DNA of 62,578 bases, taken from contig NC_068984.1 of assembly GCF_001194135.2 (NCBI RefSeq), forward strand, positions 87,602,424 through 87,665,001, given 5' to 3'. The notes beneath the pieces are model-generated. The model did no database searches and was not told where the DNA came from. It worked only from the letters and a program-made list of their open reading frames with translations. Shown piece after piece: positions 9,591 to 60,835 of the stretch. A program made the position numbers and the translations under genes. The stretch is from Octopus bimaculoides (lineage: Eukaryota). Numbering within the stretch: the stretch's first letter is position 1; each line of letters begins with the position of its first letter.

Positions 9591-9594
9591 CACA

Positions 9595-26111: not shown

Positions 26112-26211
26112 TATATAATATGTATATATATGTATATATACATATATACATATAGACATACATATATGCATATTACATATATACATATAGACATACATAT
26201 ATGCATATTAC

Positions 26212-26291
<80 letters not shown>

Positions 26292-29406: not shown

Positions 29407-29987
29407 GCAGACAGGTAGAAAAATACGCTCATATTGGTTGGCTGTACAGATAAATATATGCACGTCTGTTTGCATGGGTGTACGCATGTCTGTCTTTGTC
29501 AGTCTCTCCCCACCCTCTGTCTGTCACTGCTCAAAATTAATCGTTCGTGGTTATCAGCTGGAGAGAGAGTACTACAATAGAGCTTTGATTAAATACGCCN
29601 NNNNNNNNNNNNNNNNNNNNNNNNNNNNNNNNNNNNNNNNNNNNNNNNNNNNNNNNNNNNNNNNNNNNNNNNNNNNNNNNNNNNNNNNNNNNNNNNNNNN
29701 NNNNNNNNNNNNNNNNNNNNNNNNNNNNNNNNNNNNNNNNNNNNNNNNNNNNNNNNNNNNNNNNNNNNNNNNNNNNNNNNNNNNNNNNNNNNNNNNNNNN
29801 NNNNNNNNNNNNNNNNNNNNNNNNNNNNNNNNNNNNNNNNNNNNNNNNNNNNNNNNNNNNNNNNNNNNNNNNNNNNNNNNNNNNNNNNNNNNNNNNNNNN
29901 NNNNNNNNNNNNNNNNNNNNNNNNNNNNNNNNNNNNNNNNNNNNNNNNNNNNNNNNNNNNNNNNNNNNNNNNNNNNNNNNNNNNNNN

Positions 29988-34336: not shown

Positions 34337-36206
34337 GGCGGCGAGCTGGTCGAAACGTTAGCATGCCGGTCGAACTGCTTAGCAGTATAACGGCTCCGTG
34401 AAGTTAATACGTGGTGATTTTTGAATAGTTTTCTTTGTGCTGCTTTGCAGCGGTTTAGGTGTTTACGTGTGTAATTTGTTTGAGCTTTCTCTTCTTGTAA
34501 GAGAAGAGACAGCTGGTTGAAGAATGTCTGAAGACGGTTATAGTTGCTCAGAGGAGGAGTTGCTGGAGGCAGTTAAAACAATGGACCAGAAACTGATAAA
34601 AGAGAAGCGGAATTTTGCTGATGTAGCAAGGTGTAAGGAAACAGAAGTGGACATTAGGGAATTCGGAAGACACAAAGAAGAAATGAACCGAGATGGGTTT
34701 GAAGTGAAGCTGTCGCCCCCGCAACAGGTTAAAAACAGAATAAGGAAAAGACAATAATCTATCGAACCTTTTCGATAAATAAAGGAAGAATAGACGTCGT
34801 CACAACAGAACAAATAGAAAAGGCGTTAAAGCAGATTTGGGAAGACATAATATACCTGACTAGAGGTTCAACATTTGGAACAGTAGAAGTGAGGTTTTGT
34901 AATGAAGCAGCAGCAAGGAAACGTGCAGCGTCGACAATTCGGGCCAAAAAAAAAAGTGGTGCTGTTGCCCACGTATAGACACATGAGAGCAACAAGGGTC
35001 ACGGTTGAAGGAATCCCACCGGAGATTGATGTGACCTGGGTGGCAGATGCTGTCCTCTTTGGTAATGAGGACAACATAGTAGTGCTCCAGGCCAAGAAAA
35101 AAGTGTGCGTCAACTGGATGGGGTCAACAACTGGAGATGATAGTCCAAGGTTCAAAAGAAACGATGGAAAAGATTACGGAAATCATAATTATGGAAGAAA
35201 CAATTATGACTGTCAGGGTGGAAGGAAGAGTTCCAAATTGCTTTAAATGTGGCCTGAAGAGACACATAAGAGCAGAATGTACATCAAAGCCAAGGAAAAA
35301 GCGACCAAAAAATACGGAAGAGAAGATAGAAGAGAGCTGCAGAAAGGAAGTAACCGAAAAAGAAAAGGAAGTAGCGGAAATAGGAAAAAATAAATGGCAA
35401 AATGTAACAGGAAAAAAATGAAAAAAGGCAAGTGAGCTAAACTGTAAACCACATTCCACACCCATTCCACCCACACCCTCCCAGACCCACCCACTCCCTG
35501 CAGACACTAGGCCTAACCATTCCCATCCGACACAAAAACAAGAGGCAAACACATACAAAGAAACCCAAAACCCCTCCCCCAAATAAAAAAAGAGAAGGAA
35601 AAATGTAGGATTTATATGTTGCTTAGCGACGAACTGTTAAGGGATACGGCAGAATGGGACATAAAGTGTATTGGAACTGCGGGGTATGATAATGTGGAGG
35701 AACATCACTTGTGTGTAATACCAAATAAGAAGCAAGAGGGAAAAATACAAGAGTTTATGGTTGGATTTTATTTTTAGGAGGTGGACTGCAGCTGGAGCTC
35801 ATTCCCAGGATTTACTACGAACGATGGGTGGTTGGAGGAAACAGGTATCGATGTGTTAGAAGGTTCAGGATTTAAATAAAGTAGAAAATGAGGCCACTCG
35901 TAAGTGGGGCGAGTGGTTCCATTTCCATTTTATCATTTTCATGTCTTCATACGTTATAACATTCATTTCCATTTTTATATGTTTTATGTCCCACATGTTT
36001 TGTTTGTCACCTATGTTAGCCCGCATGGGTAATAAAGAAACAGGTATTTCATGTCTTTTAAGTTCTGAGTTCAAATTCCATCGAGGTTGACTTTGCCTTT
36101 CATCCTTTTGGAGTCGATAAATTAAGTACCAGTTGCGTACTGGTTGATCTAATCGACTGGCTCCCTTCCCCAAAAATTTCGGGCCTTGTGCCTAGAGTAA
36201 AAAAGG
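34337..36206 (+). mobile_element. SINE family B split into 34337-34388 and about 36041-36206, flanked by a 12-bp TSD
   Basis: ATATTTACCAGG occurs at 34327-34338 and 36207-36218. The two halves reconstitute the consensus seen at 33195. Confidence 0.85.
34390..36040 (+). mobile_element. L1/Tx1-like element carrying only a decayed ORF1 and a 3' UTR
   Basis: ORF1 from ATG 34524 has an RRM-like segment (GTVEVRFCNEAAA, TRVTVEGIPPEI) and a CCHC knuckle CFKCGLKRHIRAEC, then a Pro-rich linker. It ends GCCCGCATGGGTAATAAAGAAA. No EN or RT motifs were seen. Confidence 0.7.
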
Positions 36207-39375: not shown

Positions 39376-41916
39376 GTTCTTATATATAAATAACATATAT
39401 ATATATATATATGTTATNNNNNNNNNNNNNNNNNNNNNNNNNNNNNNNNNNNNNNNNNNNNNNNNNNNNNNNNNNNNNNNNNNNNNNNNNNNNNNNNNNN
39501 NNNNNNNNNNNNNNNNNGGGTGTGGGCCTGTAGCCTGGGAAGGGGAAAAGCAGTGTCGTGTACCTGTATATATATAATTTATATATATATATATGTATAT
39601 ATATAGATAGATAGGTAGAATTTCTCACCTTGTCATTTTTTACAGAAAAGATGGATATTTTAGCTGTTACTGGGATAATATACAAATTCTTGAATTTCGA
39701 TTCAGTTCATTTGTAGTTGCTCTTTATTACACTTCCATCATTTGTTGTACAACTATAGCTGATTTTCACATTGTTCCTTTTAAAAAACTTATAATTCATG
39801 TTGCTTTCACAAAATTTATTTTGAAAAGGGCTATTTAATGTTTTGTTCTAATCAAGTTTTGCTACTGAAAAGTTGAAAAACCTGGAAGTGTCCCATTATA
39901 TCATATTTGAAGTGTGGTTAGAATTTTTATTCACATGAGCTCATTTGGATTCCTATATGTTTAGTATTTTCTGGCTTAACTTGTAAATTGATGTAGTCTT
40001 GTAGGTCCAGATATATCATATTTTTGTCTAAGAGCCATACTGTGTATCCATCATGTAGTTGTTAATCACATAGAGAACAATGAGCTAATAAGGAAATCTT
40101 TACCTGCTGATTAAAAAAGTGACCAGGACAGAGCTAATGAAAGAGCCTAGAAATAATAGCCAAATCTTCCTTGAACTATACTGGATAACTCAGTACAGTA
40201 AGATTTTATCTTTACTTGTTGATGCTAAAATACTTAGATTCAGAAATGAAATATTCCTTATGTGTAACAAAACTGTTTAATGTTTTCTTGAAAAAGAAAA
40301 AAAACCCAATAGTCACTAAAAATATAAAGATTTTATTGTATCTCTTCAAAATATTGAATAGTGCTTTAGAAAATGGCAGACACAGAATATATCACTTGAA
40401 TGACTGTATATGGTTAGCATAAAAGTTCCAATGTTTGGTATAGCAATGGTCTTGCAATAAGTTAATTGCATAATTTATTATAAATGTAACCTCTTTCATA
40501 GGGATTTAACAATCATAAAATAATTTAATCTCATTCAGGTTAAGGCCTTCATATGCCAGATTATTCATAATGATACCTTTCAGCATATCAAGAGTTTCAA
40601 ATTTTACATTCATCAAGTGTCTTTTTGTTTGGCTGGTTGCCTTTGTTTTAAAGTATTTCTTGGCTAATCAGTTCCAGTCTGCATGTAATCCCATAAACTG
40701 TTAGCTTGTTACATTGATTTTTATAAAAATCATTTATGTGGGGGGGTTTTATGTTAATGATTGATAGAATTCTAAAAGGTCATGTTTATTGAGACTAATT
40801 CTATCAGATAATTTTATAGGGATATGTTATATTTCTCCCCATTGCTGCTTGTAGAACATAAAAGGTAAAATAAGCACTTGAAGTTTTTTGTGTTTCAGCC
40901 AATTTAGTGGTTTTTCTTGGCAGACTTTCTATAACTTAATGAAGTATAGCCTCCAAAAGCCCCAAAGGATTTTATTTTTTAAAAGATATTTTTGCTGAAT
41001 ACAATAAAGGGTTTTTTTTTTGTTCTTTACAATGTTATTAGTAGGTTTCTTGACTGCAACTGCAGACTACTCTTGAAACTTCATTCTTTACTAACAGTTG
41101 AACTTCTGCAAAATTTAAGATATTGTTTGCTTGAAAGGAATAATTAAAATTTTTTCATATTCACAAAGTAATTACCACCAATCAAGAGAACCAAGATGTT
41201 AGTTTGTTGATATCTTCTGGGAATATGCCAGTGCCATCATTATAACATATGCCAGTGCTGTCATCATAAAAAGTCTACAATATTTCCATGCGGCATATTA
41301 GTTATAAATGGAGTAAACAGTTTTATGTGATGAGTGATATAATTCATTATTTCTTCCACACAAAAGCAAATGTCTTGGTTACACTAGATGCTAATGCTCT
41401 TTTTACAAATGATTCTTTCTAACTATAGAGTTTGAAGTTTTTGTAATAATTTCTTAGTGGAAGTGTATTGAATGCTATGGACTAGTTTGCATATATAACA
41501 TGTGTTTTGTGTCACTAATTTCACTGCAAGTTGTGTATAAGAAATCCATGCTATACTTTATGTACAACACTTTGTGTCAGACAACAGAATGGATATTTTC
41601 TCATGGGAGATTTTGATCCCTTCTTGTGGAAATTGCAAAACTGGATATATTTTCCCTTTCAAGTAAAACAGCTTTTTTCTGATTTATTATGTAGGATAAA
41701 CTTAATCTCAGATTTGAAATCAGAACATATAGTACTATAAATACATACTGCAATGCATTTTCTCCAATTCTCTAATAATTCTGACAAACCACCTCTTTTC
41801 TTCATTTTAACATATAGAATTTAATTTTTTAGACTCCTTATTTTAAAGTAGTATTTCCAACTACATAATTTGTATTTGTTTTTGAATGACGATATATATA
41901 TATATATATATATATA

Positions 41917-43276: not shown

Positions 43277-44364
43277 TTATGTATATATAAATTATTTATA
43301 TATACACACATATATATAAATTACACAATAAATATCTGATCAATAATATCTGTTATCATGACTGTATGGTGGTAGTGGGTAATAATAATTCACCATTCTA
43401 GAAGACCTGTGGTGGGAGGATTGTGTGGTGGTGGGTGATAATAATTCACCGTTGTAAAATACCTGTAGCGAGAATATTTAAACCTTGGCAGCTGTCAATG
43501 CTTTCTCTCTATAGATACAAATAGACATACAGAGAGAGAGAGAGAGAGAGAGAGGTGGTGGGAGAAAGAGTGACAGAGAGATGGCGAAGCTGGAGAGGGA
43601 AAGAGAGTGGAAGCTGTCAAACGTCATTATAGAGAGAAAGTGGAAGGAAGGGAGGAAAGAGAGACCGAGGAAGACAGGGTGATATCCAAAAGAGAGAAAC
43701 GACAGACACTTGTCAAAGTCTGAGTTTTGTTGCCCTAGTAACCACAGCTTTTGAGATGGAGATTTCTAACATAGTCCAGTCACTTTCTCGTCTCATTTTA
43801 CATGTCCCTGTAAATTTTCACCACACTCCAAGCACGCCTGCTGCCATTGAACCCTGCATAACCACTAAATAAGACATGCAAACATACAACTTTCGGCCAT
43901 TTCACTTTTATATATAGATCGTCGTCGTCGTCGTTTAACGTCCGCTTTCCATGCTAGCATGGGTTAGAGCATAGAAACCTAGTTGACAACAATGTATATA
44001 GTTCTGAATGTGAATTTTGAAAAGGTTGTTTCACATTTCATTGTTGGAATTCAAACTTTCAATAAAATACTTCAAGTGTTTAGGTATGCAACTTCACAAC
44101 TATTATTCCCTAAGGGATTATGTAGTCATTTGATTCAAGTAAAATCAAAAATGATGAACAAAAATGCATTTCAAGTGATAGCAATATCTTCTTTCAATGA
44201 TAAAAAAAAACCCCATTTAATAGGTAATTAGAAAAAAACTGCAAGTAACTCTTTAAGATATCAATGAAATGAGTGATATAAAGAATGAAAAAGCATAGAT
44301 GAAAATATTCATAAATTTTACACTCTTCCCATCTTTTTTCAGCCTCATCATTTAAATCCTCAAA

Positions 44365-44601
44365 ATGCCTAAGCACCAAATTGTTGACCTTGAAAGCCTT
44401 GTTAAAGAACGCATAAAGAAATTTCCATTTGACAAAAAGGAACAAGATAATATGGATAAAATTTCGTCCAATGACATAAATTGGAAAAATCTTGCTGTGT
44501 TCCATGGCGAAACAAAATATGATGATACAACTTCCTTTAAAAAGCCTAATTCTCATATATTATTTACAGCAAATTTTGAGAATAGAACCGATCATGTACA
44601 G
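44365..44601 (+). CDS. Coding exon 1 (79 aa) of an aerolysin/ETX-MTX2-like (LIN-24-like) putative pore-forming protein
   Basis: Acceptor TTTTTTCAG at 44342, ATG at 44365 and donor CAG|GTGAGT at 44601/44602 (phase 0). Reads MPKHQIVDLESLV...INWKNL...HGETKY...SHILFTANFENRTDHVQ. Confidence 0.85.
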
Positions 44602-45689
44602 GTGAGTTACTTTCTTTTTTTTTAAAGATTTTTATCATTTTCAAGATATTTACTAAATTCTTAGAAGCCTTATTTTTAGCTGCTTTTCAAAATCTTTTGG
44701 TATTTTTAAATGATTCTTAAAAGCAGAAAAATTATTATTGGAATTCACTAGAGATGTGGTGAGTTAAATAATTTCGTCAGTCCTAAATTATTAAATAGTT
44801 ATTATTTTATTTTTATCAAATATAATCTTCAAAGCTTAAGGTATATCTGCATCTGTAGAAGTTTAAAAAAAAAAGATATGAGGTAAAGACATATCTATGA
44901 GGAAGATTAAAATTCAGTACTTCAAATAAAGTTTATTATTGAAAAATACTTTGTTTGATTCCATTGTAATTCATTTTGATCTTTATTTTTTGCCCACAAT
45001 CTTTTAATATTCTTTTATTCAGTTATTACATACAACTCCTACATAACATTCACAACACATGTAGAACACTTAATAAAGGAGGTAAAATGTCAAACACATA
45101 CTTAGAGTATTCCCAGATGCCAGATTTGGCCAACAAAACCAATAATGTACAATGTATTAGATCAATTGGGAATTACTCTACCCCAGCTTGAGTTCTTGAA
45201 TAAATTAATAAGAGCACAAAACAATGTGCTTCACATCATCATGGGCTGCACACAAGTTACACCTATAGAAATACTACACAATGTGATACAAGTATGAGTA
45301 AAAAAAGATTCTTTAAGGATGCAAAGAGCACAGTTTGTTGCTACACCAAGCTCCAGTGCTAATGGTTTCTATCTCTACATTCACAATTACTCCCAATCAG
45401 AAACATATGCAACACATCTTCTGTATTATCCTCAACAGTATTTCACAACTATCTTAATGCATTATCACTATTTAGCTCACTCAAATATAAAAGATAGATA
45501 CACAAAGAAATAAAGGTGTCATTATTATTAGAGTCCATGCTGAGACACACATCACCAATGATAAGCATGGAGAAATAGCAACTGTTATGATCTGACTGAG
45601 TGCATATCTACTGTGGCCAGCACCAGATTTAGCAGGCATACAGAAATAGTGGACAGTACTGAGAATTCTGTTGCACTATTGTCTCATAT

Positions 45690-45870
45690 GAGTAACCATG
45701 GGCTGTTGAAGGTAGTGAACTGGAATAGTTCTGAGAGTATCAGATTGAATGCCACATGGTGTTTTATCTGACTCTGTATACTCTGAGTACAAATTCCACC
45801 AAGGTCAAGTTTGCATTTTGTCCTCTGGGTGTCAGTAAAAAGTACCAATCCAGACTGGATTATTAGAACT
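45690..45870 (-). mobile_element. SINE family B, CpG-decayed
   Basis: CTGAGTACAAATTCCACCAAGGTCAAGTTTGCATTTTGTCC core with a diverged head region; orientation is uncertain because of decay. Confidence 0.4.
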
Positions 45871-46270
45871 AGTAAGAGTGTTAGACCAGATACTAGCAAT
45901 ATACATTTCAAGTTTGCATTCTAACAGAAATCAACCTGTCTCTTGGACATCATTACCTGTCTCTTGGACATCATCAATGTATGAAATGGAGAGATTTCTA
46001 TGCTACACTTCTTCAAAACTCTTTACATAGACTTATATTTTCAGATGCAAAAGCCCATGATATCAGCCATGACTGAAAAAAGTCCTAGAATGGGATAGGC
46101 AATATTCTTTAGCTTAATGAAATCATGATGTATTTGAAATAATAGATCTATGGATTTCACAATCATTTGTCTGACAGTCTGCGTACCACATAATAATAAT
46201 GCTGATATTTACATTTCCCTTCATTATTTGTGAGTGATATTTTTGACAGTAATTTTTTTCATAATTTTAG

Positions 46271-46480
46271 AAACATTCACTGAAGACTGAGCGAAGAACC
46301 AAATCTACATGTACCTTAAAAACAGAGAGAGGGTATAGTATTGGAAGCTCATTTCAACTTAAATTAGTGCCACCCAATCCAGTCATTGATGCTAATGCTG
46401 GATTCCATGGATCTCTAAATGTTTCAAAGATGGATGAAGAAACATTTGAAGAAGAATTAGTATGGTCAGTGGATAGCCAA
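46271..46480 (+). CDS. Coding exon 2 (70 aa) of the aerolysin/ETX-MTX2-like protein; absent from the ORF track
   Basis: TTTTAG|AAA acceptor and CAA|GTAAGT donor; 210 nt open. Reads KHSLKTERRTKSTCTLKTERGYSIGSSFQLKLVPPNPVIDANAGFHGSLNVSKMDEETFEEELVWSVDSQ. Confidence 0.88.
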
Positions 46481-48549
46481 GTAAGTGATTATTTCAATAT
46501 CGTATATAATTCATGACATAAGCTGTAGCAAAGCCGATAAACTTATCGTAGAACAAGTTTACAGTTTAGGTTTGATTTGTAGTTGTAGCTAATTGTAGTT
46601 CTAATGTCTCTTAGAAAAGCATGAACACTGTATTTCCTATCTCCCACTCTTTGAAATCAATAGGTCTGACTGATCAGCTCTTGATTGATCTTTTAGTTGT
46701 GAAAGTTTAAGCAATTAATTTTATTTATCATATTAGCTCAAGAAATCACACTGTTTTTATGTCATTCATATTTTGATCATAAATATTAAAAAAGGAGAAA
46801 ACTTAAATGTATTCTTATTTCCCATCTATCAATAAAACCTTCTCCTCCTTATCTCTCAATATAACCATTCTTTCTCCAGATGAATATCTCATTAAAATTT
46901 TTGTAGCATCACCATTAAAGTACAAAACATAAAATAAATATGATTATATATATATATAAAGGGAAAAGACATCTAAAAGTAAAGTAACAATGACATATTA
47001 CTGGTTATAAGCTTAAAATCAAATACTGATTTCAGTATCCCAGGCTACACCTATTTGCATCTTGCCATCTGCAGTATTGTTCTTCACCTCAGATCTCTTG
47101 TTGCTAATTTGCATCATAAACAACAATTAACTTTCCAGCTTGACACAGCCCATCCACCTGGGATTAATAAAAAAATGTTGCTTTCTTCTAATAATTCTGC
47201 CTTAACTATTAATGCCCCTTAAATATCCTCATGTGCATTTCAAATCCAACTTCACACTCATACACTGTTATGCCATGCTTGTACTGTCCACACAGTAGTA
47301 TGTTAACCCTACCTCAATTCAACATGCTTCCATTTCCCTATACACACACATATACATACTTCCTTACATATATATGATATGCTCTCACACTCCTTAAACC
47401 CTAGTGAAGCTCTTTAATTATCTTCTATTGTCACAGTTTTAGCAGTAAAAGACCAGTCAACATCTCTCTACTCTGCCTCCTGCCATTCATTTGTTTTCCA
47501 TGCAACCTTAGCTATAAACAACGTTGCTTTTCACATAACATTCTTCTTTTCCTTTCATTTCCTCTCTTTTGGTTTTTGGTGAAGGTATACTGTCCATAAC
47601 ATTGATTTCTCTTCTGTTCCTTCCTTTTGGATAATTATATACTCATTTGTTGCTTTGTTGTATTTCATTTTTATTGAGTCCCTTTGAATATTCCATCATT
47701 ATGCTGATGCTGAACATATGGATTACCACAAGATTTACACAGATAACAAAAGAATTCTTTAGTTTCGGTTTAACCAATTCTAGGGGGTTCAAAACAACAC
47801 TGTAATTGTTGATTTTGAACACTATTCCTATAACATTGTGGTAACATCCTTTATACACAACAAACTTTACTCTTTTATTCTTTAAGAGAGAAATAATTTT
47901 CCAATTATTAACAACAATGTAATTTGCCTCTACTGCTTCTCTTTCTCAAACATGCAACCCAACACAGAGGTAAAGCAGAATGAACATAAATTTAATCATC
48001 TTTCTGTAAAAAAATGCAAATAGAGATACCATCTTTCAAAAAAAAAAAAAAACTGAAATGATTTTGGTAATAGTATGTTTTCTCAAACCAAAAGTAGATA
48101 CAAATGCACATGCATGCACACATACATGCATGCATAAGTGTTCTTAACCTATTGATTTGAAGATAACTCCTGATGGCATTCAGGGTGAAACATTATATGG
48201 GGTCTTTGAGAAAGGATACAGAGAAAATATTTCCTGTTGCTAAAAGAAGTGGTATTTATATATGACAGCAGGATGGCTTGAGTTAGTCTGTTGGAATGAT
48301 AGGAGAGTTCAGACATGCATTAATCTCATTGTTGATGTATGCAAGAAATAAAAATATAAAAATCCTAAGATGAAACATAGAGGATACCTATTTCCTATTT
48401 GAACATAAAACACATGAAGTAAAACACCCGTGCATCATTCTTTTTACTGTTATGATTCACATAACCACACGTGCACAACTGCATGTATATGCATATTTGC
48501 ACATATACAGCCAGAAAAGTATGTGTGTGTGTATAAATGCACACACACA

Positions 48550-48591
<42 letters not shown>

Positions 48592-49191
48592 TACATATGC
48601 AAAGTGGGAGCAGATTTACTCCATTTAACATGACCCCATTTAATATATCACACACTAGCTTTTGTGCATCCCTTGGAGACTGTACAGAAAGTCAAGAACA
48701 ACACCATTCTGCTTCTGACTAAGCTGTAATAAAAAGAGATGTATAGATACTGATAGCTGTATGTATGTGCATGCGTGTGGGTGTGTATATATGTGTGTCT
48801 GAGTGTGCATGTGCACATGCGTGAGTGCATTTAGAAACTAAAGGCCGGCATTTAAAATTGCAGATAAATTGATTTTATTTATCTTTGAGAGCTTAATGTT
48901 GACTAGTCTATATTTCACAGTTACATGTTATTAATACACATACACACAGAGAAACACATGGTTTGGCAGTTGCTTGGATTTTGAAAACCAAAAACCCTGC
49001 TGCTGTGTGGATCAAAGAACATGGTCTTTTTGCAATAGGATCAAAGCTGCTCAGTTCTATTGGAGGGTGTCATACTGTTAGAAGATACCAAACATACTGT
49101 GATCTCCATGATCACAATGGGTTTAGCATACGAAGGGAATATTTTGCTCCGCAAACAATTTTTAAGAGATATGGGAAGTAGACGTTAAATG

Positions 49192-49229
<38 letters not shown>

Positions 49230-50227
49230 NNNNNNNNNNNNNNNNNNNNNNNNNNNNNNNNNNNNNNNNNNNNNNNNNNNNNNNNNNNNNNNNNNNNNNN
49301 NNNNNNNNNNNNNNNNNNNNNNNNNNNNNNNNNNNNNNNNNNNNNNNNNNNNNNNNNNNNNNNNNNNNNNNNNNNNNNNNNNNNNNNNNNNNNNNNNNNN
49401 NNNNNNNNNNNNNNNNNNNNNNNNNNNNNNNNNNNNNNNNNNNNNNNNNNNNNNNNNNNNNNNNNNNNNNNNNNNNNNNNNNNNNNNNNNNNNNNNNNNN
49501 NNNNNNNNNNNNNNNNNNNNNNNNNNNNNNNNNNNNNNNNNNNNNNNNNNNNNNNNNNNNNNNNNNNNNNNNNNNNNNNNNNNNNNNNNNNNNNNNNNNN
49601 NNNNNNNNNNNNNNNNNNNNNNNNNNNNNNNNNNNNNNNNNNNNNNNNNNNNNNNNNNNNNNNNNNNNNNNNNNNNNNNNNNNNNNNNNNNNNNNNNNNN
49701 NNNNNNNNNNNNNNNNNNNNNNNNNNNNNNNNNNNNNNNNNNNNNNNNNNNNNNNNNNNNNNNNNNNNNNNNNNNNNNNNNNNNNNNNNNNNNNNNNNNN
49801 NNNNNNNNNNNNNNNNNNNNNNNNNNNNNNNNNNNNNNNNNNNNNNNNNNNNNNNNNNNNNNNNNNNNNNNNNNNNNNNNNNNNNNNNNNNNNNNNNNNN
49901 NNNNNNNNNNNNNNNNNNNNNNNNNNNNNNNNNNNNNNNNNNNNNNNNNNNNNNNNNNNNNNNNNNNNNNNNNNNNNNNNNNNNNNNNNNNNNNNNNNNN
50001 NNNNNNNNNNNNNNNNNNNNNNNNNNNNNNNNNNNNNNNNNNNNNNNNNNNNNNNNNNNNNNNNNNNNNNNNNNNNNNNNNNNNNNNNNNNNNNNNNNNN
50101 NNNNNNNNNNNNNNNNNNNNNNNNNNNNNNNNNNNNNNNNNNNNNNNNNNNNNNNNNNNNNNNNNNNNNNATATATATATATATATATTTGTGTGTGTGT
50201 ATATATATATGTGTGTGTGTATGTATA

Positions 50228-52547
50228 TAAAGAAACATTGATGATAGAACACACATCAAATTCAAGTCAGCGACTTTATATATAACACCATACCTCAAGC
50301 ATTTGATCATCTATAAATATTACCATGGTTCTAAAACATGTAAAAATATACATATGCAAAAAACACAAGAGGTAAAAATATATGTGAATAAAATACAAAT
50401 ATATAGGATGGCCTATCAAAAAAGTAAATACAAACAACTAACAATTCATAAAAATTCTAAAGCGTGTCATGCAACTAAAAAACTAAATAAAGATAAAATA
50501 AAATATCAATCAACTAAAAGAGGTTTCTTAAAAGATTTCTTTAATCTTAACATTATTTTTGATGTTAACTCCAGAGTGGTGAATTTCTTAGATGTTACCT
50601 TGAATTTGGATACAGGTTTATACTACCCATTTCGTAAGCCAAACAAATCCATTCTCATATATCAATGTCTCCTCCAATCATTTGAAATCTACCATTGATA
50701 GCATCATTGCTGTTATCTCAATCAGAATCTCGAACTTGTCTGCAAACAAAGAGATTTTTGATCAACATGTGCCGGTATACAACAACGTTCTAAAATTAAG
50801 CAGCTTCAAAACTAAAATCTCATATATACCTAACACGAGATTTAAAACAATTTGGTTGGTCTACCACCATGTCATGGATAGTTGTGAGAAATGCAATGCA
50901 TTATTTGATTGCAACCAATATAAGCCATCAATTAGACACGTATATAAAGATGTTAGAAATAGATACTGGAAGCGAAATAGAGGTAGTGAGGATAAAACCA
51001 AGATCTCATGTTCTAGAATACAGGAAGTCATATGGTTTGCCACCCCTTTTTCTCTTAGAGTAAGAAACTTACCCAAGCTGTTTTTTAGGATTCTGAAGGA
51101 GAATTTCCCAAAGAATCATAAATACTACAGCATCTGCAATAAGTCTTCCATCAAATTTTCTTACTCAGTAATGCCAAATTTGGCCTCCATTATTGCATCT
51201 GTTAATAGAAGCAAGTTAAATGGGCAAGTGCACAAGAAGTATTCTTTTGCTGGAAACCCTGGTATTGGGCAGGTAAGCTCTACTACGCCTAAGGTTAGTG
51301 CTACAAGCCATTTGCTCCCACTGATCTTATTGACCCCCAATAATGAGATATGAGAAGCAAAGCACACTGGAAGCCAGATAAGTAATGTTATTATTAGTAA
51401 TAGGGTTAGGAGTGGCTCTGGTAAGTCCTGTAATCATAGAAACCCTGGATTATTCTCCCCTTGATGGGTTCTCTCTCACTACTAATGCCATACATAAATG
51501 TGTTGTTAAAGATGAGGGTAATTTGGATAAGTTTTATAGAGGCAGTACTGTAAATTTTAAGGCTAGGTATAGGGTCCACATGAATTCGTTTTCAAACAAA
51601 AAATATTGTAACTCTACTACACTTGCCTCATATATACATGGCTTAAAGTGGAATAATAAAAGTTATTCTCTTGAACGGTCTGTTATATCGAGGGCCCCTT
51701 ATTTCAGAGTTAATATTAATAAGTGTATGTTATGTGTAAGGGAATCTCTTGCCATCCTTAAGTCTTTTGGGCCTAAAATTTTAAATAAACTTGCTGGGGT
51801 GATCCCTTTTTGCAACCATAAGTTCTCTTCTACTTTTCTGAAAGTGTATAGAAGTAAAAGCAGAAGTAGTAAATATTTAGTTTTACAGGGTTTGAAACTG
51901 GCGGGTTAAAATTTCTATTAAAAACAGCTACCTGCATGTTTAGCATTGAAATAATTCGTTTTTTTTTTTGTGTGTTAGAAAATTTAGACTGGTCTTGTTA
52001 TGGGTTTATCTTTAAATTAGCCATGTGGTGTTGTATGAACTTTTTGGTTTTGCTTTGTGCTTTTCCTGTTCATCCTGATGAGGGAGTCATTGCCGAGATG
52101 CACTTTCAATGTAATCGAACCATGGCAATGAAATCCCGAAATGGCCATTGGTGTGTTTGAATTGATTTTGTGGAACTCTTTTTGCTCCTGGTTTTAAGAA
52201 TTGAACATTTTAAATGTACTGTTGTGTGAGGGGAGTAAAAAACACTTCTTAAAAATTTTTTTAGTCGATTGATATTTTATTTTACCTTAGTTTATTTAGT
52301 AGCATGACACACTTTAGAACTTCTATGAATTTTTAGTCGTTTGCATTTACCTTATTGATAGGCCGTTCTATATATTTGTATTTTATTCACATATATATTT
52401 TTACCGTCTGTATTTTGGTATATGTATATTTTTATATGTTTAAGAACCATAGTAACATTTATACATACTCAAATGTTTGAGTTATGAGGTTATATATAAA
52501 GTTGTTGACTCAAATTTAATGTTTGTTTTACGATCAATGTTTCTTTG
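50228..52547 (+). mobile_element. Penelope-like element, 5'-truncated and decayed (RT C-terminus plus GIY-YIG endonuclease), with an inverted terminal copy
   Basis: NFLDVTLNL..G.YYPFRKPN, IWFATPFS, KENFPKNHKY, IKFSYSVMPN, KFYRGST.NFKARYRVH..SF, NSTTLASYI and C.LCVRE are in frameshifted ORFs at 50303-51909. 50228-50530 is an inverted copy of about 52245-52547. Confidence 0.88.
52071..52153 (+). ncRNA. Type I hammerhead ribozyme of the PLE class
   Basis: CUGAUGA at 52075-52081 and GAAA at 52138-52141. Helix II is GGGA/UCCC extended by UCAUUGCC/GGCAAUGA; helix III is the palindrome AUGGCCAU (52141-52148); the site is AUU at 52147-52149; helix I is CAUC/GGUG. Confidence 0.7.
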
Positions 52548-52859
52548 TCTCTGTCTCAATTACATTTGAGCACTTCTTTTTTGCAGTCCTGTAAACCCTT
52601 TTTTATCCATAAAAAGAAACAAAAATTATTTGTTGTGTGTGTGTGTGTGTGTGTTTCTATATATGTGTATATGTATGTATATATATGTATGTGTATGATA
52701 AGGCTATGGTCATCCCAGGTTAGTGGTTCCAGAAGCATCATCGTCTATTGTGTGTTTTGAAGTAAGTTATAGGGAAACCAATAAAAACAGGTATGGGCAA
52801 CAATGATCCAAAAATCATCACCCCCACCAAGAAAAGATAGTAATATCATTATTATTATT

Positions 52860-53072
52860 AAGGTGGCAAGCTGGCAGAATTGTTAGCATGCTGGGCAAAA
52901 TGCTAAGAGGTATTGCATATCTTCATGTTCTGAGTTCAAATTCCACTGAGACCATCTTTGCTTTCAGCCTTTCAGGGTCAATAAAATAAGTACCAGTTGA
53001 GTACTGGGGTCGATGGAATCAACTTATCCCCAATCTTGAAATTGCTGGCCTTGTGCCAAAATTTGAAATCAA
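52860..53072 (+). mobile_element. SINE family B, CpG-decayed
   Basis: GGTGGCAAGCTGGCAGAATTGTTAGCATGCTGGGCAAAATGC: CG positions of the consensus are replaced by TG/CA. Confidence 0.85.
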
Positions 53073-54149
53073 TACTGTTAACATTATTGTAAGGTGTAAA
53101 CTCAAAGTTGTTTTGTTATAAAACTCCAAAATATACTTGGCAGATAGGAAAATGGTATGGGTAAAAACATTGGGAAGAGGACAACAGACAGTTGTTTACA
53201 CATGACACTTTCACTCATGCGCACGTGCAAGTATTTATGTTTATACATGGAATAGTTAAGGTGAACATTGTTACATAAGAAACTTTATTCTATAATACCT
53301 ATAGAAGCACCAGACACAGGACTTTCATATATCTGTGTGTGCTACTGAAAGTAATACAGGCAATCTTTGAATCAAGGAAGCCATCTTTAACACCAAGCTA
53401 AGGCCAACTCTGAACAACAGAACGAGTTACATGAAGCAAACTGTATTATTAGAGCATCAGTCTACTCATGCTACTATCCTTTCCTACACATCTGAGCAAT
53501 GACTCATTCTTCCTTCCACTTCTCCACATATCCCGAAGAAGTGGTTATAACTCTGAAATATCAAAATACAATGTAAAACTTCAACTGTTGTTCAGTTTTC
53601 CCTTATGTAGTAGTTCACTTTGTATTTCACATTGCTTTGGCCTTGCCATTTTTTATCGGATATTTGTGTGTGTACTTACATGTATATCCTTTTATCACAG
53701 AAATTGTGTCCTACAAGTGGTCTTCATTTGTTTTCTATCTCATATATTACATACTATTCTTTGTAGTTGTATGGAAAACCACCGATAAAATGATTTATTT
53801 CATATTTTCAGGAAGCTTCTACGTTTCATAATGTAAGCAGACCTTCATTCTTACTTGTAAGAAGGAAGTGTCTAATTTAATTGCAGGCAGACAAAATGTT
53901 ACTTTAGTGTAAATAGTTAGTACATCTGTTATGAATACAAATAATATGTGGTTTGAGTCACACAATTATCCTCTGATATTTAACCCCCATTAGTTTTTTT
54001 TTTTTTTTTTACTTAAAGTATTCCATGCTATTATTTTGAGCAGACTTTCAGATACCCCTTTAAAAGACATACATACATACATACACATATGCACACAATA
54101 CACACACACATGTGTGTATATATATGAAGTTAAATATGCTCTTGGTGTC

Positions 54150-55100
54150 ATTAAGCAGATTTATTAACATTTACTGAGTCATTTTCACAATTTCATGGTT
54201 TTGTGAGATGATGGGGACATGGTAACATGTCTGGCAAGACATCTATGTCATAGCTCTGACTCTTCTACGATGCTAGTAATATTGCTCTTATTTTGAAGTA
54301 ACCATGTTTTTGGTTATGTTTTTATGGTCTAAGTGGATGATCTCTAGCTGAGCCTGTCTGTATGCATGTTTCTCTGAATGTGATGGTATATGTAGTGATA
54401 AGGGCAATCAGGGTTGTAGCTTGCTGTAATAAGCTATACCCTTTTTATGTCTTGGTGACACCTTGTTTTTAATATTTTTGTTTCGTTTTCAGTTGGTCTG
54501 TAATTATTTACTTAATGTAGCCTGTGCTGATGCAATTTCATTTTTCTCTTTTTGTAGTTCCTTATAGATATTTTGTGAGAGATTGGTAAAAATCCAGGTA
54601 GGACTGGAACAAACCATGATGAATAAAATGTATTGTCTGTACACTAATGTTTCTGTATCTTTGTATTGGCCAAGTATGTTGCCTGTGGATGTTCTGAGTT
54701 ATTGTTGTTTAACCACAGCTCGGCTCTGCTCATGCAGATCTATGGTCAAAGACGTCCAACCTGTGACCATCTTTACTATTGCTATATCATCCACATTATC
54801 CAATGTGTTTCTTTAAGTTAGTTGTGTGTGATATGGTGGGGAATTTGCCTTCTATATCTAGCAGGTCAAATGGCCTTGTATAAACTCTCTTGCTGGTTCC
54901 CAATTTCTAAGTATGCTGGTGCTGTTTTTGCTTTCTTTACTATATCTTCTATTTTAGAAATGTTCTTCTATAACCCTTATTATTTTTGCTTACTCTGTAT
55001 GTATGTGCGTGTGTGTTTGTGTGTGTGTTGTACTTATGTTACTTAGTATAATGTTTTGCTGTTTTGTGGTCTCTGGAGTTGCTGGTAAAAGGGAAACATA
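54150..55100 (-). mobile_element. Decayed I/Nimb-like LINE RT fragment
   Basis: The minus strand gives NVDDIAI (YADD-like) and GNILGQYKDTETLVYRQYI...SSPTW (resembles WG..KETL..TYK...Y.AP.W). Confidence 0.4.
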
Positions 55101-56399
55101 GAAGATTTGGTATTACAGTAGGTTTGTTACTATGAATTTAGCTGCCTTAATGTTTGTTGTAGAAGCAGTACAGCTGCATATGTAGGAGTGGCAGGAAGAT
55201 GTAAGCTTCAGATTTTGAAATCCCAAGCTCTCACCTTTCTATCACTCCTCCATACACATCTTGAGATTGTCAGCATATTCTATTCTCTTAAAAATATGGA
55301 AAAAGATAATGTATGTATATGAGGGCAAAAGTATTGCCTAAAAAGAGATGGTGAAACAATGGATCTTTGCAGTAGACCAATTAATAAAACTGCATATATT
55401 CTACATGTGTTGAAGGCTACCAAATGTGCTTTTGTTTTAAGATGGTTCATGATTTAAGAAAGATTTTACTGTTATTTCTAGCAGATCAAGTCATCATGTT
55501 AAAACTCCCTCATTGATTCAATGCTTTGTGCCGTTTTTAAAATTTGTTTCTTAAGTATTCTCTACATATGTGAATAGAAGTAGATAGGATTAAGGGCTTA
55601 GCTCTCTACAGCCATGATTGAGTGGTTACTATGCAACCATGTGACTCTTGGTTTTATCTTTCTACATGGAAGCTCAAGCTGGTGCCTTCTATTATAGCCT
55701 CAGACAGATTAAAGCTTTGGTAAACAAAACTATATGGACCCCTATCATGTGAGAGCATGTGTGCATGCATGCGCACATGTGTATGTGTGTATATATTTCT
55801 GTGCTTATCATTGTATCTGGGTTTATGACTACTGGTGTATATTGCATTTTTTTAGGTAACAAAAAAAATGGCATTTTGTGTAAAAAGCATGATTACTGTC
55901 AATCAATAAAAGTCAATGAATTGGAGGCAGCACTGTTGATTAAAATCCTTGAAACTGGTGCCTCAGCATGACAGTAGTCCAGTGATTGAAACTAGTACAA
56001 GAGCGTTTTAATGATTGTTATTATTGTACACATGCGTGTCTGTGTGGTGGTAATGATGGAGATGGAAGTTGGGTGAAACTATATTTTTGTGGAATGTTTG
56101 TGAGTAGTGTAGTGATTTGAATCCACATGATGAAGTAGAGAGAGAAATGTGAGAGTTTGTGATACTGAAGACAAATATTTCTAAAATGCTTGTGAATGTT
56201 CATAGATGGGTGATGAGTCTGATTATACTGCTTTGGTCTGATTATATTGCTTTGGTCTGATTATATTGCTTTTGTCAAGCTCTAGGGAATGACAAAATCC
56301 TAAATAGACAGGTAAATCAACTAGGACCTAAAGGAATTATTTACCTTCATTAAATTCTTCAATTGTTCATGCCATGAGCCAAACTCTACAAATTTCCCT

Positions 56400-57130
56400 C
56401 TTATCATATGCTATCAGTTAAAGAAAAGAAGAGCACAGTGAGTATTGTAGTTCTAAATGAGATAATGTTTGCAAAACAAAATGACTGGATTATCACATAT
56501 GGATTCAAGCCATTCTACTGAAGCTTTATGCAGTTCAGAAAGAATACATACTCGTTTCAACAATATCAAAATGCCCTATGAGCACCATCAGCATCAACAG
56601 TGTTTTACTCCATTCCTCAGTATCCACTTATAAACAAAACTTCCATCATCTAAATAAACAACATGAACTAACAAGGAAGTCTCAGCTTTTAACTGCTGGA
56701 TACACCATGTAAATTCCTTTAAATCATGTCTATCTTATTAAAAGCTGACTCATTGAATTGTGTGATCCTAGATAAAATAACCAGTTTGGAATGCTTTTTA
56801 TTATGGTTTTGCTCAATTAAAGCAAACCTGACTCAAAGAAACAACATAAGTCACAGATTAGTGAACTAAGACCCTAACTCCGTGTAGAATAACAAAATAA
56901 TTTCTCAATGTACTGCAAAAACTGATCTTGTTATGCACTTCTTTTAACATAGATAAAAAAACCTAATTCAGTGACCTTTTTAAAATGTAAATTCACCTTG
57001 CATGCAGATGATACCACAACCATTCTCAACCAGCCATTTTCCAACAGTGTCAACTAGAAAGATTAAAAATAACATCTACCAAATCTATCTCTTCCCTTCT
57101 TATCAACTATACCAATGAACACCAAACATT
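56400..57130 (+). mobile_element. Heavily decayed LINE RT fragment
   Basis: FTLHADDTT near 56995 and NHVYLIKS near 56722; otherwise full of stops. Confidence 0.35.
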
Positions 57131-57146
57131 CAGCACCATAAATATC

Positions 57147-57184
<38 letters not shown>

Positions 57185-58170
57185 AAAAAGAACACTATAA
57201 GTTACATTACTACAGGTTTCTCATCCTATTTTGTAAAACAGTCTAACATAAAGTCTAACAGAATATAAAAAAAAACAACATAAAAAAGCAAACAAAAAAA
57301 GCATTGATAAGCTCATTAGCTCCAAACACAATGCTGTGGTCCATTTAACTAATGGTAAGTGAAGAAGAAAAGCAACTGTTGTGCTTTAGTTACCATACCA
57401 TATTTTTACTATGGTCGCACTTAGAATTTTGACATACAATGAATGAACAAATAAATCTCTACACAGTTGCTAGACTTGCAAGATGCAACAGCTAAATATC
57501 CCTCTAATTACACCTTATTACCTTAAAAAGAGTGGGTCACATGGATAATATAATGCTTGAGAGAAGGGTAGGATGGTTATGGTTGTAATGCCTTTGTTTA
57601 TAGGTCTGTTCCGGGGGTTAAACAACTAGCATACAAAAAAATATTTTGGGTAGTAGAAAATATGTTTGGAATATTACATGACAAACTTCATACAATAAAC
57701 CACTATATCTCAAAGTGCAAGTGTATAGTCAAAGAAGCTTGAAATATCAGGAATAATCAGTCTGAAGATCATCACATCTAGTGATTCAACCAATTATTTA
57801 TGACTATTCAGTTAGAGCTGACTGAGGCAAAATGACAGCAATATTGAGCATTAGAATGAAATGTAATATAGTAATGTTGCATAATGAAAATACCTAAAAC
57901 ATAAGTAAATTAAAACCTGATATATCTCCATAATTTTTGTATATCTTCATTTCATCTTACTAATATTTTACAAGCAACTAACTTTTCTTTATGTATTTAG
58001 TGTTCAATCAGATTTCTTTTTTTCAAATTAACAAAAAGCTAAAAATACATTTACTGGATTCATTAACAAGGTTTTAAATCTGATTATCTATTAAAAATTT
58101 CTTTGCTTTCAAATTTATTCAATGACTGACCATAATGTTTCAACAACTTCTTTCTTCTCTGTATCAAAAG

Positions 58171-58479
58171 GTTTCAGTTCAACCTGGTTATAAAACCTCT
58201 GCAAATCTTGTGATTCGAGAAGAAGAATACATTGGCTCATTTACCAGTGAAACTAGCTTTCAAGGCTTAATACATGTCACATTGCGAAACAAGAAGGATC
58301 AATCTGAGATGAAAACCATGACAATTCCTGTTACTCAAGTCTTCACTGAGGAGAAAGGTTTCACATGTAATGGAAATAGTTCCATCTTTGTCAATAGAGG
58401 AGAGTGTCGATGTCGATTTGGTATTGAGCAAAAACTATCTTTGGCTGAAGAAAAATTAGAAGAAAACACAGAAGATTAA
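58171..58479 (+). CDS. Coding exon 3 (102 aa plus stop) of the aerolysin/ETX-MTX2-like protein
   Basis: A pyrimidine tract and AAAG|GTT acceptor, phase 0. Reads VSVQPGYKTSANLVIREEEYIGSF...GECRCRFGIEQKL...TED*. AATAAA occurs at 59016 and 59041. Confidence 0.85.
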   Translation, partial: VSVQPGYKTSANLVIREEEYIGSFTSETSFQGLIHVTLRNKKDQSEMKTMTIPVTQVFTEEKGFTCNGNSSIFVNRGECRCRFGIEQKLSLAEEKLEENTED

Positions 58480-60835
58480 ACATTGCTTTTATCCTAAAAT
58501 GTCATTTGCATATATCCCAACTTGGTGTCATATTCATTGGTTGCTATTTGAAAAGCAATCATTTAAAGTATTATATCATTTAATATGTAGCCTATACATA
58601 ACCACAGTATATTAATAGGAAAAAAGGAAGCCTATTTTCCATTTTTTTTTGTTTATTTTATTTTTACTGTAGAATGGAAGGATAACTGCACAAATGTATT
58701 TAGTTACATTGTGGCAGAGTTGGTTGACAACATTCAGCAAGCTTAAAATAGATTTATAATCCAGTTGAAGAGAAGATGATGCTTATTTAAATCTTTATTC
58801 CCCAAATTATGGAGCTTTTTTGAAATACAAATGAATCTATTTACATATATTTACTAACTATATTTCTTTTTAAATATTAAAAAAGCATTTATAATATTTA
58901 CACATTTTATGATTAAAAAAAAAATTTAACAAGCTGTTAAAGAATCCCTCACTGATTTGCTTTGGAATTATAGAAGAAAAAAAACAATTTCACAATGAGT
59001 GAATGCCAGCCAGATAATAAATATTTGCTATAATCATCTAAATAAAAGATCACTAATTTATTTAGTGTGTAAAATATTCATCAGCATTGTTCTCCTCCTT
59101 CTCTTACTTCAAAGCATACATATTCACCATAAAACAAAGCAAAATTTGTTGAGCATTGTACCAAGATAAAAGTTACAACCTTTTGTACATTCCATGTTCT
59201 GACCTACATAAGCAGTCATAATTTAACCTTAGGGTGGAAGAACTATTTATTTAGAAAGACTAAACTTTTCTAAAGACAGCATTTTTAGAGTTAGATGGGT
59301 CTAACAAAGAATAAGCTTAAAATAAGCAGAGATAGAAATATTCTCAGTTTGAGAATTGTCCAAGTTAATATGAATGGACCTGTAGAAGTTGAGATTTTAA
59401 AACTCTATTTGAAATCATTGAAGAATGATCAAGAAATTGGGAATGGATGGGTAAGTTTGGAGAGAAATATGAATGGGAATGGTTAATATAACAGGAAAAT
59501 TTTGTTTTTTATATATTGATTTTTATTATTATTTTGTTAAATTATAAACATGACTCAAGTTCAGTATTTTAGGATGATTTTGGAAGGAAACAGACAAATT
59601 AGAAACAAGTGATGTAGTTGAGAGATATTTGAAGGGGTCTTATATTTTTAAAGGAAAATTGTGCTAAACTAAAGGTTTGTGTGGAAGTGTTGAAGTAATA
59701 ATAGTTTTGAAGAGATGAGTTTGCAACTTTTAGTTGTAAATTTGAGAATGAAATCAACTAAAGAGTTGTTGCAAACATTTTTTCTCACTTTCTACGTGCA
59801 AGGTTTGAGTCTTTTAAAGTAAAGCAATCATATTTTGGTCAAAGGATGACCTTATGAGATATCCATAGTTGTAGATTTCATTAGATGAAATCTTCCTCCA
59901 CAGTAACACTTGCCAGACTATAGTTTTGTGCAGTGTCCTACATGGAATGAAGGATCCTAATATGGTATGCCTGCACCCTCTGGTAGGGCACAAAATGACT
60001 GGCTTCTGGCTTGTGTAACAAAGTGGGGATGTATTATTTATCAAAATCACCTTTTAGAATAAAAGTATGAAGTAATTCTTAAGAATAATTTTTTTCTCTA
60101 CAGTATGCAAAGAACTGAGTGTTTAAGCTAAAGGAAATTAACTAGTTATTAAAAGATTGACATTTTCATCTTCAAATATGATATTACTTTTGTAGATGCA
60201 AGAAGGTTAATTTCCTAGTGATGTGGTGAATAGAAAAGGTTGGGAATAATTGACTTTTAAGAAACCTTATTTCAACAGCTGCTGGTAGAAATCTGCAACA
60301 GATATTTTACAGAAACAAGGATTGTGAATGAGTTTAAATGGTAGTGCCTGAAACCTGCAAGGGTGTGAAGGGTCACCCCAGATAGTAGAACCAGACTAAA
60401 TTCCTTGTATCCTTTAGCTGCATAACTTTGTGAGCTTATGTATCAAATATTTAATATTAACCCTTAAATGGTAGACATCATCAATTGTTGCTTCATTAGA
60501 GGACAACAAACATCATCGATTGAAATACATTAGCACAATGTAGGAATCTCAAATGAATTTATGCTGAATGCAAAGCCAAGTGAATATTTTACGGCACTTT
60601 TTGATGATGAAATTGTAAATTTTATTGTGTGAGAGATGAACAATTATAGTTTTTGTACTTAAAGTGAAAATAAGTATAAAAATTACCCTTAAGAAAAATG
60701 TTTTTGTGTTTTTTGCCCATTTGGCACATATATTCATGCAGCCTTTTCCTGCTATTTAGGGATTAGATATTAGGATTGGTAATGTGTTTTATTCCACTGG
60801 AGTAAATATGATAGATATCAGTTATATTTTATTTA

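Follow-up and report, generated by a model that had tools for sequence, protein, structure and literature searches.

Animal proteins built on the aerolysin fold are usually regarded as secreted toxins or immune effectors acquired from bacteria. LIN-24 of Caenorhabditis elegans, a protein of 271 residues with an aerolysin-like domain at residues 68-193 (PMC12945463), is expressed constitutively, mainly in the intestine; its gain-of-function alleles are cytotoxic, and the wild-type protein aids resistance to infection and starvation (PMC12945463, PMC11860826). Roles in cell death, immunity and starvation have been described for it, along with effects on lipid metabolism and mitochondrial shape that are not biochemically tied to a pore (PMC12945463). 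Among mollusks, the Glabralysins of Biomphalaria glabrata are encoded by five intron-containing ETX/MTX2 genes and were modeled on 4RHZ (Cry23Aa1) and 2D42 (Cry45Aa1) (Lassalle et al. 2020, PMC7016736); the tree published with them takes in Gastropoda, Bivalvia, Cephalopoda, Brachiopoda, Rotifera, Annelida and Nematoda (PMC7016736). Here we consider the gene LOC106872336 of Octopus bimaculoides, which lies in a stretch of 62,578 nucleotides (assembly GCF_001194135.2, contig NC_068984.1, positions 87,602,424 to 87,665,001 of the forward strand), referred to as the window and numbered from its first letter. The gene encodes a protein of 251 residues without a leader, predicted to adopt the fold of these proteins. 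Our best explanation, to which we would give a probability of about 0.72, is that the product is a regulated endogenous effector: a leaderless monomer that would bind membrane through its head, oligomerize and form a barrel from its hairpins.

The coding sequence is spliced from three exons (Table 1) contributing 79, 70 and 102 residues before a TAA stop, with all junctions in phase 0. Both introns are of the GT-AG type, with donors CAG/gtgagt after exon 1 and CAA/gtaagt after exon 2 (slashes mark the splice boundary); both acceptors are preceded by polypyrimidine tracts and read ttttag/A at exon 2 and ttctctgtatcaaaag/G, also written ctgtatcaaaag/G, at exon 3. The 28-kDa product is identical end to end to RefSeq XP_052823174.1/XP_052823175.1 (earlier XP_014774768.1), named "uncharacterized protein LOC106872336 [Octopus bimaculoides]" and entered in UniProt as A0A0L8H803. 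Two RefSeq transcript variants of LOC106872336 encode one identical protein, which fits alternative exons in the 5' untranslated region (UTR). A preliminary description of this DNA, made from its letters, had proposed the same three-exon model, and coordinates, lengths and phases all agree with it. The motifs it quoted are likewise all found in the spliced protein: the hairpin candidate at residues 100-132 (window positions 46331-46429), WSVDSQ/VSVQPG at 144-155 and ANLVI at 160-164. Its starting position, 44343, stands as the first base after a likely acceptor, whereas coding starts only at the ATG at 44365. No second copy or paralogue was found in the window by tblastn with the protein. That this is a functional gene, single-copy in this window, and that both gene model and fold are real, can be held with high confidence.

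For the fold, comparisons at the level of the single sequence, the family and the predicted structure may be set side by side. The Pfam family ETX_MTX2 (PF03318) aligns to residues 51-181 of the octopus protein at 21.5 bits, just under its gathering cut-off of 22 (E = 2.3e-4). Of the 32 orthologues in the alignment, 30 match the family at E<0.01 (down to 1.5e-8); nematode family members reach 40-44 bits, and PF03318 is already assigned to several homologues in precomputed annotation. The orthologue profile matches the aerolysin module of the zebrafish natterin-like protein Dln1 (E = 1.8e-4, chain residues 189-320) and Cry51Aa. An AlphaFold2 model, computed from the 32-sequence alignment with a mean predicted local distance difference test score (pLDDT) of 84.3 and a predicted template modeling (TM) score of 0.68, is an elongated, mostly-beta three-domain fold that can be superposed on solved toxins of the ETX/MTX2 type. 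In a Foldseek search of the PDB with this model, Cry23Aa1 comes first (E = 1.6e-14, TM 0.65, 254 alignment columns on a chain of 259 residues) and the Cry45Aa-type crystal protein 2D42 second (TM 0.68), followed in order by Cry51Aa, parasporin-2, Sip, Clostridium perfringens epsilon toxin (1e-8), Dln1, aerolysin (5e-7), lamprey LIP, LSL and BmALP1; the Foldseek probability is 1.00 for Cry23Aa1, Cry45Aa, Cry51Aa, parasporin-2, epsilon toxin and aerolysin. The preliminary description had named an aerolysin/ETX-MTX2 fold and anticipated that a structure search would return ETX_MTX2 or aerolysin matches; Cry23Aa1, Cry45Aa, Cry51, epsilon toxin and aerolysin were indeed returned, and the family-wide ETX_MTX2 matches and the profile match to Dln1/Cry51 bear out the assignment. 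A complete three-part fold of the ETX/MTX2 branch is thereby established at the level of the model.

A head domain (domain I) is to be expected, because the match to a Cry23Aa1-type toxin spans the whole chain; in the model it should consist of helices 9-18 and 24-29 with the adjacent strands, plus approximately residues 203-218, and the product of exon 1 would make up most of it. In epsilon toxin, the head domain is the receptor-binding part (discussion in PMC7016736). Natterin-like or lectin-aerolysin proteins such as Dln1 and LIP have a lectin module (jacalin or DM9) fused N-terminally to the aerolysin module. A Pfam scan of the octopus protein detected no lectin domain, and the orthologue profile aligns solely to the aerolysin module of Dln1. 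The earlier statement that the protein has no lectin or receptor domain thus holds insofar as a separate lectin domain is concerned, but overlooks the head of the toxin itself, which the whole-chain match indicates has been kept. At the other end of the protein, exon 3 closes with an acidic, disordered tail of about 12 residues (~240-251).

The stretch proposed to enter the membrane is a candidate that the preliminary description had already picked out, and position, model confidence and residue pattern all speak for it. In the model, residues 104-135 form an excursion between two long strands (79-103 and 136-152) and have the lowest pLDDT, 64-65. Averaged over 169 full-length relatives, hydrophobicity alternates along both arms, with positions 107, 109 and 111 hydrophobic and 106, 108, 110 and 112 polar, and then 128 and 130 hydrophobic with 127, 129 and 131 polar. 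Between these runs lie a near-universal turn at P114 and a less regular stretch in which 117, 118, 120, 122 and 124 are hydrophobic and 119, 121, 125 and 126 polar. The alternation is kept in divergent paralogues of unrelated sequence in this stretch, and the segment lies in the part of the profile matched to the Dln1 aerolysin module. A pattern of this kind marks a beta-hairpin that spans the membrane. Lamprey LIP loses its killing activity when the corresponding pre-stem hairpin is deleted or locked (PMC6537362).

The N-terminus (MPKHQIVDLESLVKERIKKF...) is charged, and the maximum 10-residue Kyte-Doolittle mean within its first 40 residues is 0.6. Only 5 of the 191 relatives that start with Met exceed 2.2, so that about 186 of 191 are without a hydrophobic leader; four of the five seem to come from faulty gene models (truncations, fusions or other aberrations), and the fifth is from Seison nebaliae. 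The absence of a signal peptide, as first described, is thus upheld across the family. An in-frame TAA stands four codons before the ATG, and therefore no N-terminal extension can be spliced onto the acceptor at 44342/44343. The RefSeq, Octopus vulgaris and Octopus sinensis models share the same leaderless start Met, and the intronless genes of Lingula and Capitella are leaderless and start at the same aligned Met. Taken together, the missing leader, the upstream stop and the single-exon leaderless relatives argue that the protein is made outside the secretory pathway. Secretion and proteolytic activation as a protoxin are typical, not defining, of the ETX and aerolysin types; the signal peptide that this route would require is not present here.

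The Seison nebaliae relative (KAI3381756.1, 458 residues) is the sole one with a convincing signal-peptide-like N-terminus (MLRQVLFITIFSLILCLSSGQ...), and it carries an extension of some 245 residues ahead of the ETX/MTX2 module. This protein may be a secreted, domain-extended offshoot of an otherwise leaderless family.

Table 1. Features of the LOC106872336 locus, in window coordinates
Feature	Position	Strand	Description
5' UTR, start of first coding exon	44343-44364	+	After probable acceptor ttttttcag/CC (44342/44343); in-frame TAA at 44353-44355
Coding exon 1, residues 1-79	44365-44601	+	Charged N-terminus, short helices 9-18 and 24-29, first strands
Intron 1	44602-46270	+	1669 bp, phase 0, after residue 79
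Coding exon 2, residues 80-149	46271-46480	+	Long strand with TERRTKSTC, amphipathic insertion hairpin, ETFEEELVWSVDSQ
Putative membrane-insertion (pre-stem) beta-hairpin, residues 101-131	46334-46426	+	Strand 101-113, turn P114-N-P116, strand 117-131
Intron 2	46481-58170	+	11690 bp as assembled, phase 0; includes gap and retroelement remnant
Assembly gap, 941 N	49230-50170	.	Within intron 2; (TA)n/(TG)n microsatellite on both flanks
Coding exon 3, residues 150-251 and TAA	58171-58479	+	Long strands of sheet/tail sandwich, remaining head, CRCRFGIEQ motif
Probable 3' UTR	58480-59046	+	Poly(A)-signal-like hexamers at 58876, 58912, 59016 and 59041; pattern only

Relatives of the octopus protein are numerous. 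A profile search covering 1.84 billion cluster representatives returned 690 relatives (E<=1e-3), of which 103 reach E<=1e-30; almost all have lengths of 240-290 residues. Alignments with molluscan homologues cover 96-99% of the length and have E values from 1e-151 to 1e-44. Identity drops with phylogenetic distance, from 93% in O. vulgaris and 68% in Argonauta to about 45-53% in bivalves and gastropods (octopus-bivalve pairs are at roughly 50%) and about 30-32% in nematode members; O. sinensis also has a member. Beyond mollusks, the family has named members in Capitella (Annelida), Lingula (Brachiopoda), Lineus (Nemertea), Macrostomum (Platyhelminthes), Seison (Rotifera) and Pomphorhynchus (Acanthocephala), and among nematodes in Trichinella, Trichuris, Soboliphyme, Thelazia, Bursaphelenchus, Ditylenchus, Plectus, Mesorhabditis and Ancylostoma. 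Nematode members have the same layout and are annotated at 267-319 residues, mostly about 277, which makes the "LIN-24-like" label of the preliminary description a fair one. A profile of the Trichinella domain and its nearest relatives finds nematode matches at E down to 1e-115. The homologue search returned many nematodes and no Caenorhabditis entry; compared by length and domain position only, LIN-24 very probably belongs to the family. When 185,579 bacterial and archaeal genomes were scanned for the conserved motifs of the molluscan family, none of 35 motif matches was confirmed as a relative, and so no close prokaryotic donor was detected.

Within mollusks, a conserved orthologue that includes the octopus gene coexists with expansions of divergent paralogues, among them several Physella genes on two contigs (28-34% identity), one in Saccostrea (P0099, 28%) and one in Patella (20%). 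The octopus gene is best described, from sequence comparison, as the octopod orthologue in a slowly evolving family of about 250 residues that extends across Spiralia and Nematoda. From the shared modeling templates and set of phyla, we strongly infer that this family is the clade to which the Biomphalaria Glabralysins belong.

Outside cephalopods, family members tend to occur as tandem or clustered paralogues. A second weak match lies 2 kb downstream in the Lingula locus (L003, 5129-5329), two Sinanodonta genes have consecutive locus tags (ACJMK2_040518/040519) on one 143-Mb contig, and the Physella acuta loci are spread over two contigs. In Trichinella zimbabwensis, T. pseudospiralis and T. 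papuae (P0088 and relatives), proteins of 781-1171 residues have an ETX/MTX2 module as their C-terminal ~250 residues. These "DNA excision repair protein ERCC-6 / RAD54-like" models are probably adjacent genes merged by one annotation pipeline rather than a real fusion.

Intron positions differ among lineages. Introns follow codons 79 and 149 in octopods, 43.7, 112 and 167 in Babylonia, and 48, 123.3, 217 and 248 in Bursaphelenchus; the coding sequence is uninterrupted in Lingula, in Capitella and in the core of the oyster gene. The simplest reading is that the ancestral gene had no introns and that each lineage gained its own. Comparison of O. bimaculoides with O. vulgaris gives a ratio of non-synonymous to synonymous substitution rates (dN/dS) of 0.50, based on few changes (11.5 synonymous, 22.5 non-synonymous). 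The amino acid replacements are concentrated, with 14 of 17 in residues 1-56 and 211-239 and 3 of 17 in residues 57-210. The variable segments are presumably the head domain, because they flank the Pfam core (51-181) and include the N-terminal helices.

The window is part of GCA_001194135.2 (chromosome CM046604.1, ~87.64 Mb), which has the same assembly gap in intron 2. The gap lies 2.7 kb past the exon 2 donor and 8 kb ahead of the exon 3 acceptor and is therefore crossed by no reading frame. On either side of it the window runs collinear, at ~90% identity, with the O. vulgaris locus (L001), which has no gap; the stretch of that locus corresponding to the gap, L001 15196-18916, spans ~3.7 kb; judged from O. 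vulgaris, intron 2 is probably about 2.7 kb longer than assembled. No extra coding match was found in L001 15196-18916, and tblastn on the O. vulgaris locus gives the same three coding blocks alone. The junctions at 79/80 and 149/150 are the same in O. vulgaris and in Argonauta hians, where the orthologous intron 2 is only ~2.8 kb, and the exon 2/3 joint (WSVD.Q/.SVP) has 0 insertions in 31 of 31 aligned molluscan homologues. A hidden exon in the gap is ruled out by the collinearity of homologues at the joint together with the three-block, gap-free O. vulgaris locus. Likewise, a mis-join across the gap is ruled out by O. vulgaris collinearity, the conserved octopod junctions and the insertion-free molluscan alignment.

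Just 3' of the gap, at 50229-52546 (+), intron 2 contains a retroelement remnant with broken open reading frames (ORFs) at 50303-51909 and a weak match there to a GIY-YIG endonuclease (E = 1.3e-3, under the Pfam threshold). The remnant is flanked by inverted arms of ~300 nt (50229-50526 versus 52252-52546, ~84% complementary) and resembles Penelope-like elements. Because O. vulgaris shares it at ~89% identity, the insertion must be old.

How such a protein might act can be sketched from the toxins that it resembles. A soluble monomer would be made without entering the secretory pathway, and its head domain (the N-terminal helices and about residues 203-218) would bind a membrane component. Monomers would then oligomerize, upon which the hairpin at 101-131 would peel off the sheet and join those of its neighbors in a transmembrane beta-barrel. 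Targets could be intracellular membranes, or the protein could act after non-classical release or cell damage; intracellular action or non-classical release is proposed because there is no leader. On this explanation the protein would be a regulated endogenous pore former serving defense, cell death or the response to stress, the kind of role reported for LIN-24, and not a secreted venom toxin. The parts of the scheme do not carry equal weight: actual pore formation by the octopus protein seems somewhat favored, and for an intracellular site of action the case is evenly balanced.

Several observations weigh against the scheme. The octopus protein alone falls 0.5 bit under the Pfam gathering score, and a sequence search of the PDB with the single octopus sequence returned nothing relevant. 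Some of the structural neighbors were deposited as non-toxic, the crystal protein 2D42 among them. In the molluscan orthologues the hairpin tip, PPNP(I/V)(I/V)(E/D)ANAGF, is almost invariant; it is conserved beyond the needs of membrane insertion, for which an alternating pattern would suffice, and the loop may have a binding or regulatory role. Cysteines C93, C228 and C230 (C-x-C at 228/230) are near-invariant (alignments A1/A3) despite the protein being leaderless, and disulfides among them might argue for an oxidizing, extracellular environment. Among the 169 relatives, C93 and C228 are both present in 103, both absent in 20 and found singly in 46, an odds ratio of ~4 that is uncorrected for phylogeny. 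These cysteines could be structural, they could form a redox switch like the one reported for toad BmALP1 (PMC7995273), or they could be a sign of extracellular life.

A rival account is that the fold has been kept while pore formation has been lost. The octopus gene would then encode a domesticated, soluble ETX/MTX2-fold protein used in cells for binding, scaffolding or signaling, and proteins or lipids would bind at the conserved loop. Few toxin-like proteins are conserved to the degree that the octopus-bivalve identity indicates, and the conservation extends to the near-invariant motifs PPNPIIEANAGF, ETFEEELVW and CKCRFGIEQ as well as to the invariant hairpin tip. The missing leader and the deposition of 2D42 as non-toxic also count in favor of such a derivative, as do those roles of LIN-24, in lipid metabolism and mitochondrial shape, that lack a biochemical tie to the pore (PMC12945463). 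However, hairpin alternation persists across the 169 divergent relatives where sequence differs, as expected if membrane insertion is under selection; the three-domain architecture of active toxins is retained in full, and gain-of-function LIN-24 is cytotoxic. A non-lytic derivative seems unlikely.

Two further alternatives concern the gene itself. Exon 1 opens at a probable acceptor, which makes at least one upstream exon likely, and a signal peptide might be sought there; together with the conserved cysteines and the signal-peptide-like N-terminus of the distant Seison nebaliae protein, this could suggest a toxin or immune effector that takes the conventional route of secretion, such as a venom component of the salivary gland. 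Such a leader would have to be read through the in-frame TAA between acceptor and ATG, and it would be at odds with the leaderless Met at which RefSeq, O. vulgaris, O. sinensis and ~186 of 191 relatives begin and with the single-exon, leaderless genes of Lingula and Capitella. We regard conventional secretion as very improbable. The gene could also be an artifact of chance ORF joining, a pseudogene or a mis-join, a concern raised by the 941-N gap between exons 2 and 3 and by the length and repeat content of intron 2. Against this stand the identity of the product with an independent RefSeq model, the collinear, gap-free O. vulgaris locus, the identical Argonauta junctions, an intact reading frame with dN/dS below 1, and homologues to E 1e-151 over 96-99% of the length. 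RefSeq identity, O. vulgaris collinearity, the Argonauta junctions and the intact frame effectively refute an artifact, and its likelihood is negligible. The regulated, leaderless pore former thus remains the preferred explanation.

What the locus offers is a place to ask about aerolysin-fold proteins inside animals. Octopods retain a leaderless member under purifying selection, and LIN-24, very probably a family member and the only one studied genetically, acts in cell death, infection resistance and starvation responses. The ~50% octopus-bivalve identity, the invariant hairpin tip and the lineage-specific introns make the family a candidate for a conserved endogenous role and not for an arms-race toxin. 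Cephalopod biology thereby gains one concrete candidate for cell-intrinsic or unconventionally released membrane attack, through which the question posed by LIN-24, how animals use aerolysin-fold proteins that have no leader, can be approached in cephalopods. A bolder and rather doubtful proposal is that the molluscan orthologue group and LIN-24 together represent an ancient protostome executioner or regulator, cytosolic and cell-intrinsic, that would be switched by signals to permeabilize the plasma or organelle membranes of its own cell. The redox state of the cysteines, removal of the acidic tail or a LIN-33-like partner may be candidate switches. If true, this would be a functional analogue of the gasdermins on an aerolysin fold.

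Elsewhere in the window, three consecutive ORFs at 1383-2830 (-) resemble a fragment of a retrotransposon of the long interspersed nuclear element type; one of them has a weak match to Pfam Exo_endo_phos_2, "Endonuclease-reverse transcriptase" (E = 1.9e-3, under threshold). Eight assembly gaps occur in the 62.6 kb, at 14391-14730, 17449-17613, 19882-20344, 29600-29987, 39418-39517 and 49230-50170 and as shorter N runs. Microsatellites of (TA)n, (TG)n and (CA)n, such as those at 9426-9932, 25639-26574 and 48395-48830, border the gap examined here and long "ORFs" near others, and yield spurious YIYI/CVCV reading frames on both strands. The interval 34000-36000 is a compositional outlier, with a G+C fraction (GC) of 0.42 against ~0.33, a GC skew of +0.16 and an A-T skew of +0.19, and contains an ORF of 114 residues at 34902-35246 (+) without a Pfam match. 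This interval could be an exon of a neighboring gene or a transposable element.

Both the gene and its family are already recorded in databases and literature, and they do not amount to a system of a new class. The preliminary description had called the protein probably uncharacterized in cephalopods. This is accurate as to function, but the gene is annotated, and the family, including its cephalopod branch, must count as already recognized because it is drawn in the Glabralysin tree (PMC7016736). Literature searches on the accessions and on ETX/MTX2 in cephalopods returned the Glabralysin paper only, and nothing on the octopus gene itself.

Among known systems, the best whole-chain structural matches are the Bacillus thuringiensis proteins Cry23Aa1, Cry45Aa/parasporin-4 and Cry51Aa (the "Mpp" class), with Foldseek E = 1.6e-14 to 4e-12 and TM 0.60-0.68. 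These crystal proteins, at about 250-310 residues, are of like size, whereas sequence identity is only 13-17%; they are bacterial toxins directed at the gut or cancer cells of other organisms, typically after proteolytic activation. They are also expected to lack a classical signal peptide. Epsilon toxin, the archetype of PF03318, has the same elongated three-domain beta fold with an amphipathic insertion hairpin in its middle domain, but it is secreted with a signal peptide and activated by loss of N- and C-terminal peptides, whereas the octopus protein is leaderless and has a short acidic tail only. The vertebrate proteins Dln1, LIP and BmALP1 are endogenous immune pore formers whose aerolysin module is homologous by profile (for Dln1, at the E value given above) and by structure. 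In vertebrate natterin-like and aerolysin-like proteins, targeting falls to a lectin (jacalin) or partner domain set apart at the N-terminus, while the octopus protein has an ETX-type head alone.

The modeling templates of the Glabralysins, 4RHZ and 2D42, are the top two structural matches of the octopus protein, and the Glabralysin tree comprises the same set of taxa as its relatives. A variable head and a conserved pore module are seen both among the Glabralysins and in the octopus comparison. The Glabralysins differ in being five diverging paralogues with tissue-specific, infection-responsive expression, whereas the octopus gene is single-copy in the window and belongs to a slowly evolving orthologue group found throughout mollusks. 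LIN-24 is an endogenous, non-venom protein. Its 271 residues and domain at 68-193 are similar in size and layout to the 251 residues and domain at 51-181 of the octopus protein, and a Bursaphelenchus family member (domain 72-203 of 278 residues) is similar again; nematode members differ from the octopus gene in their ~30-32% identity and in their intron positions.

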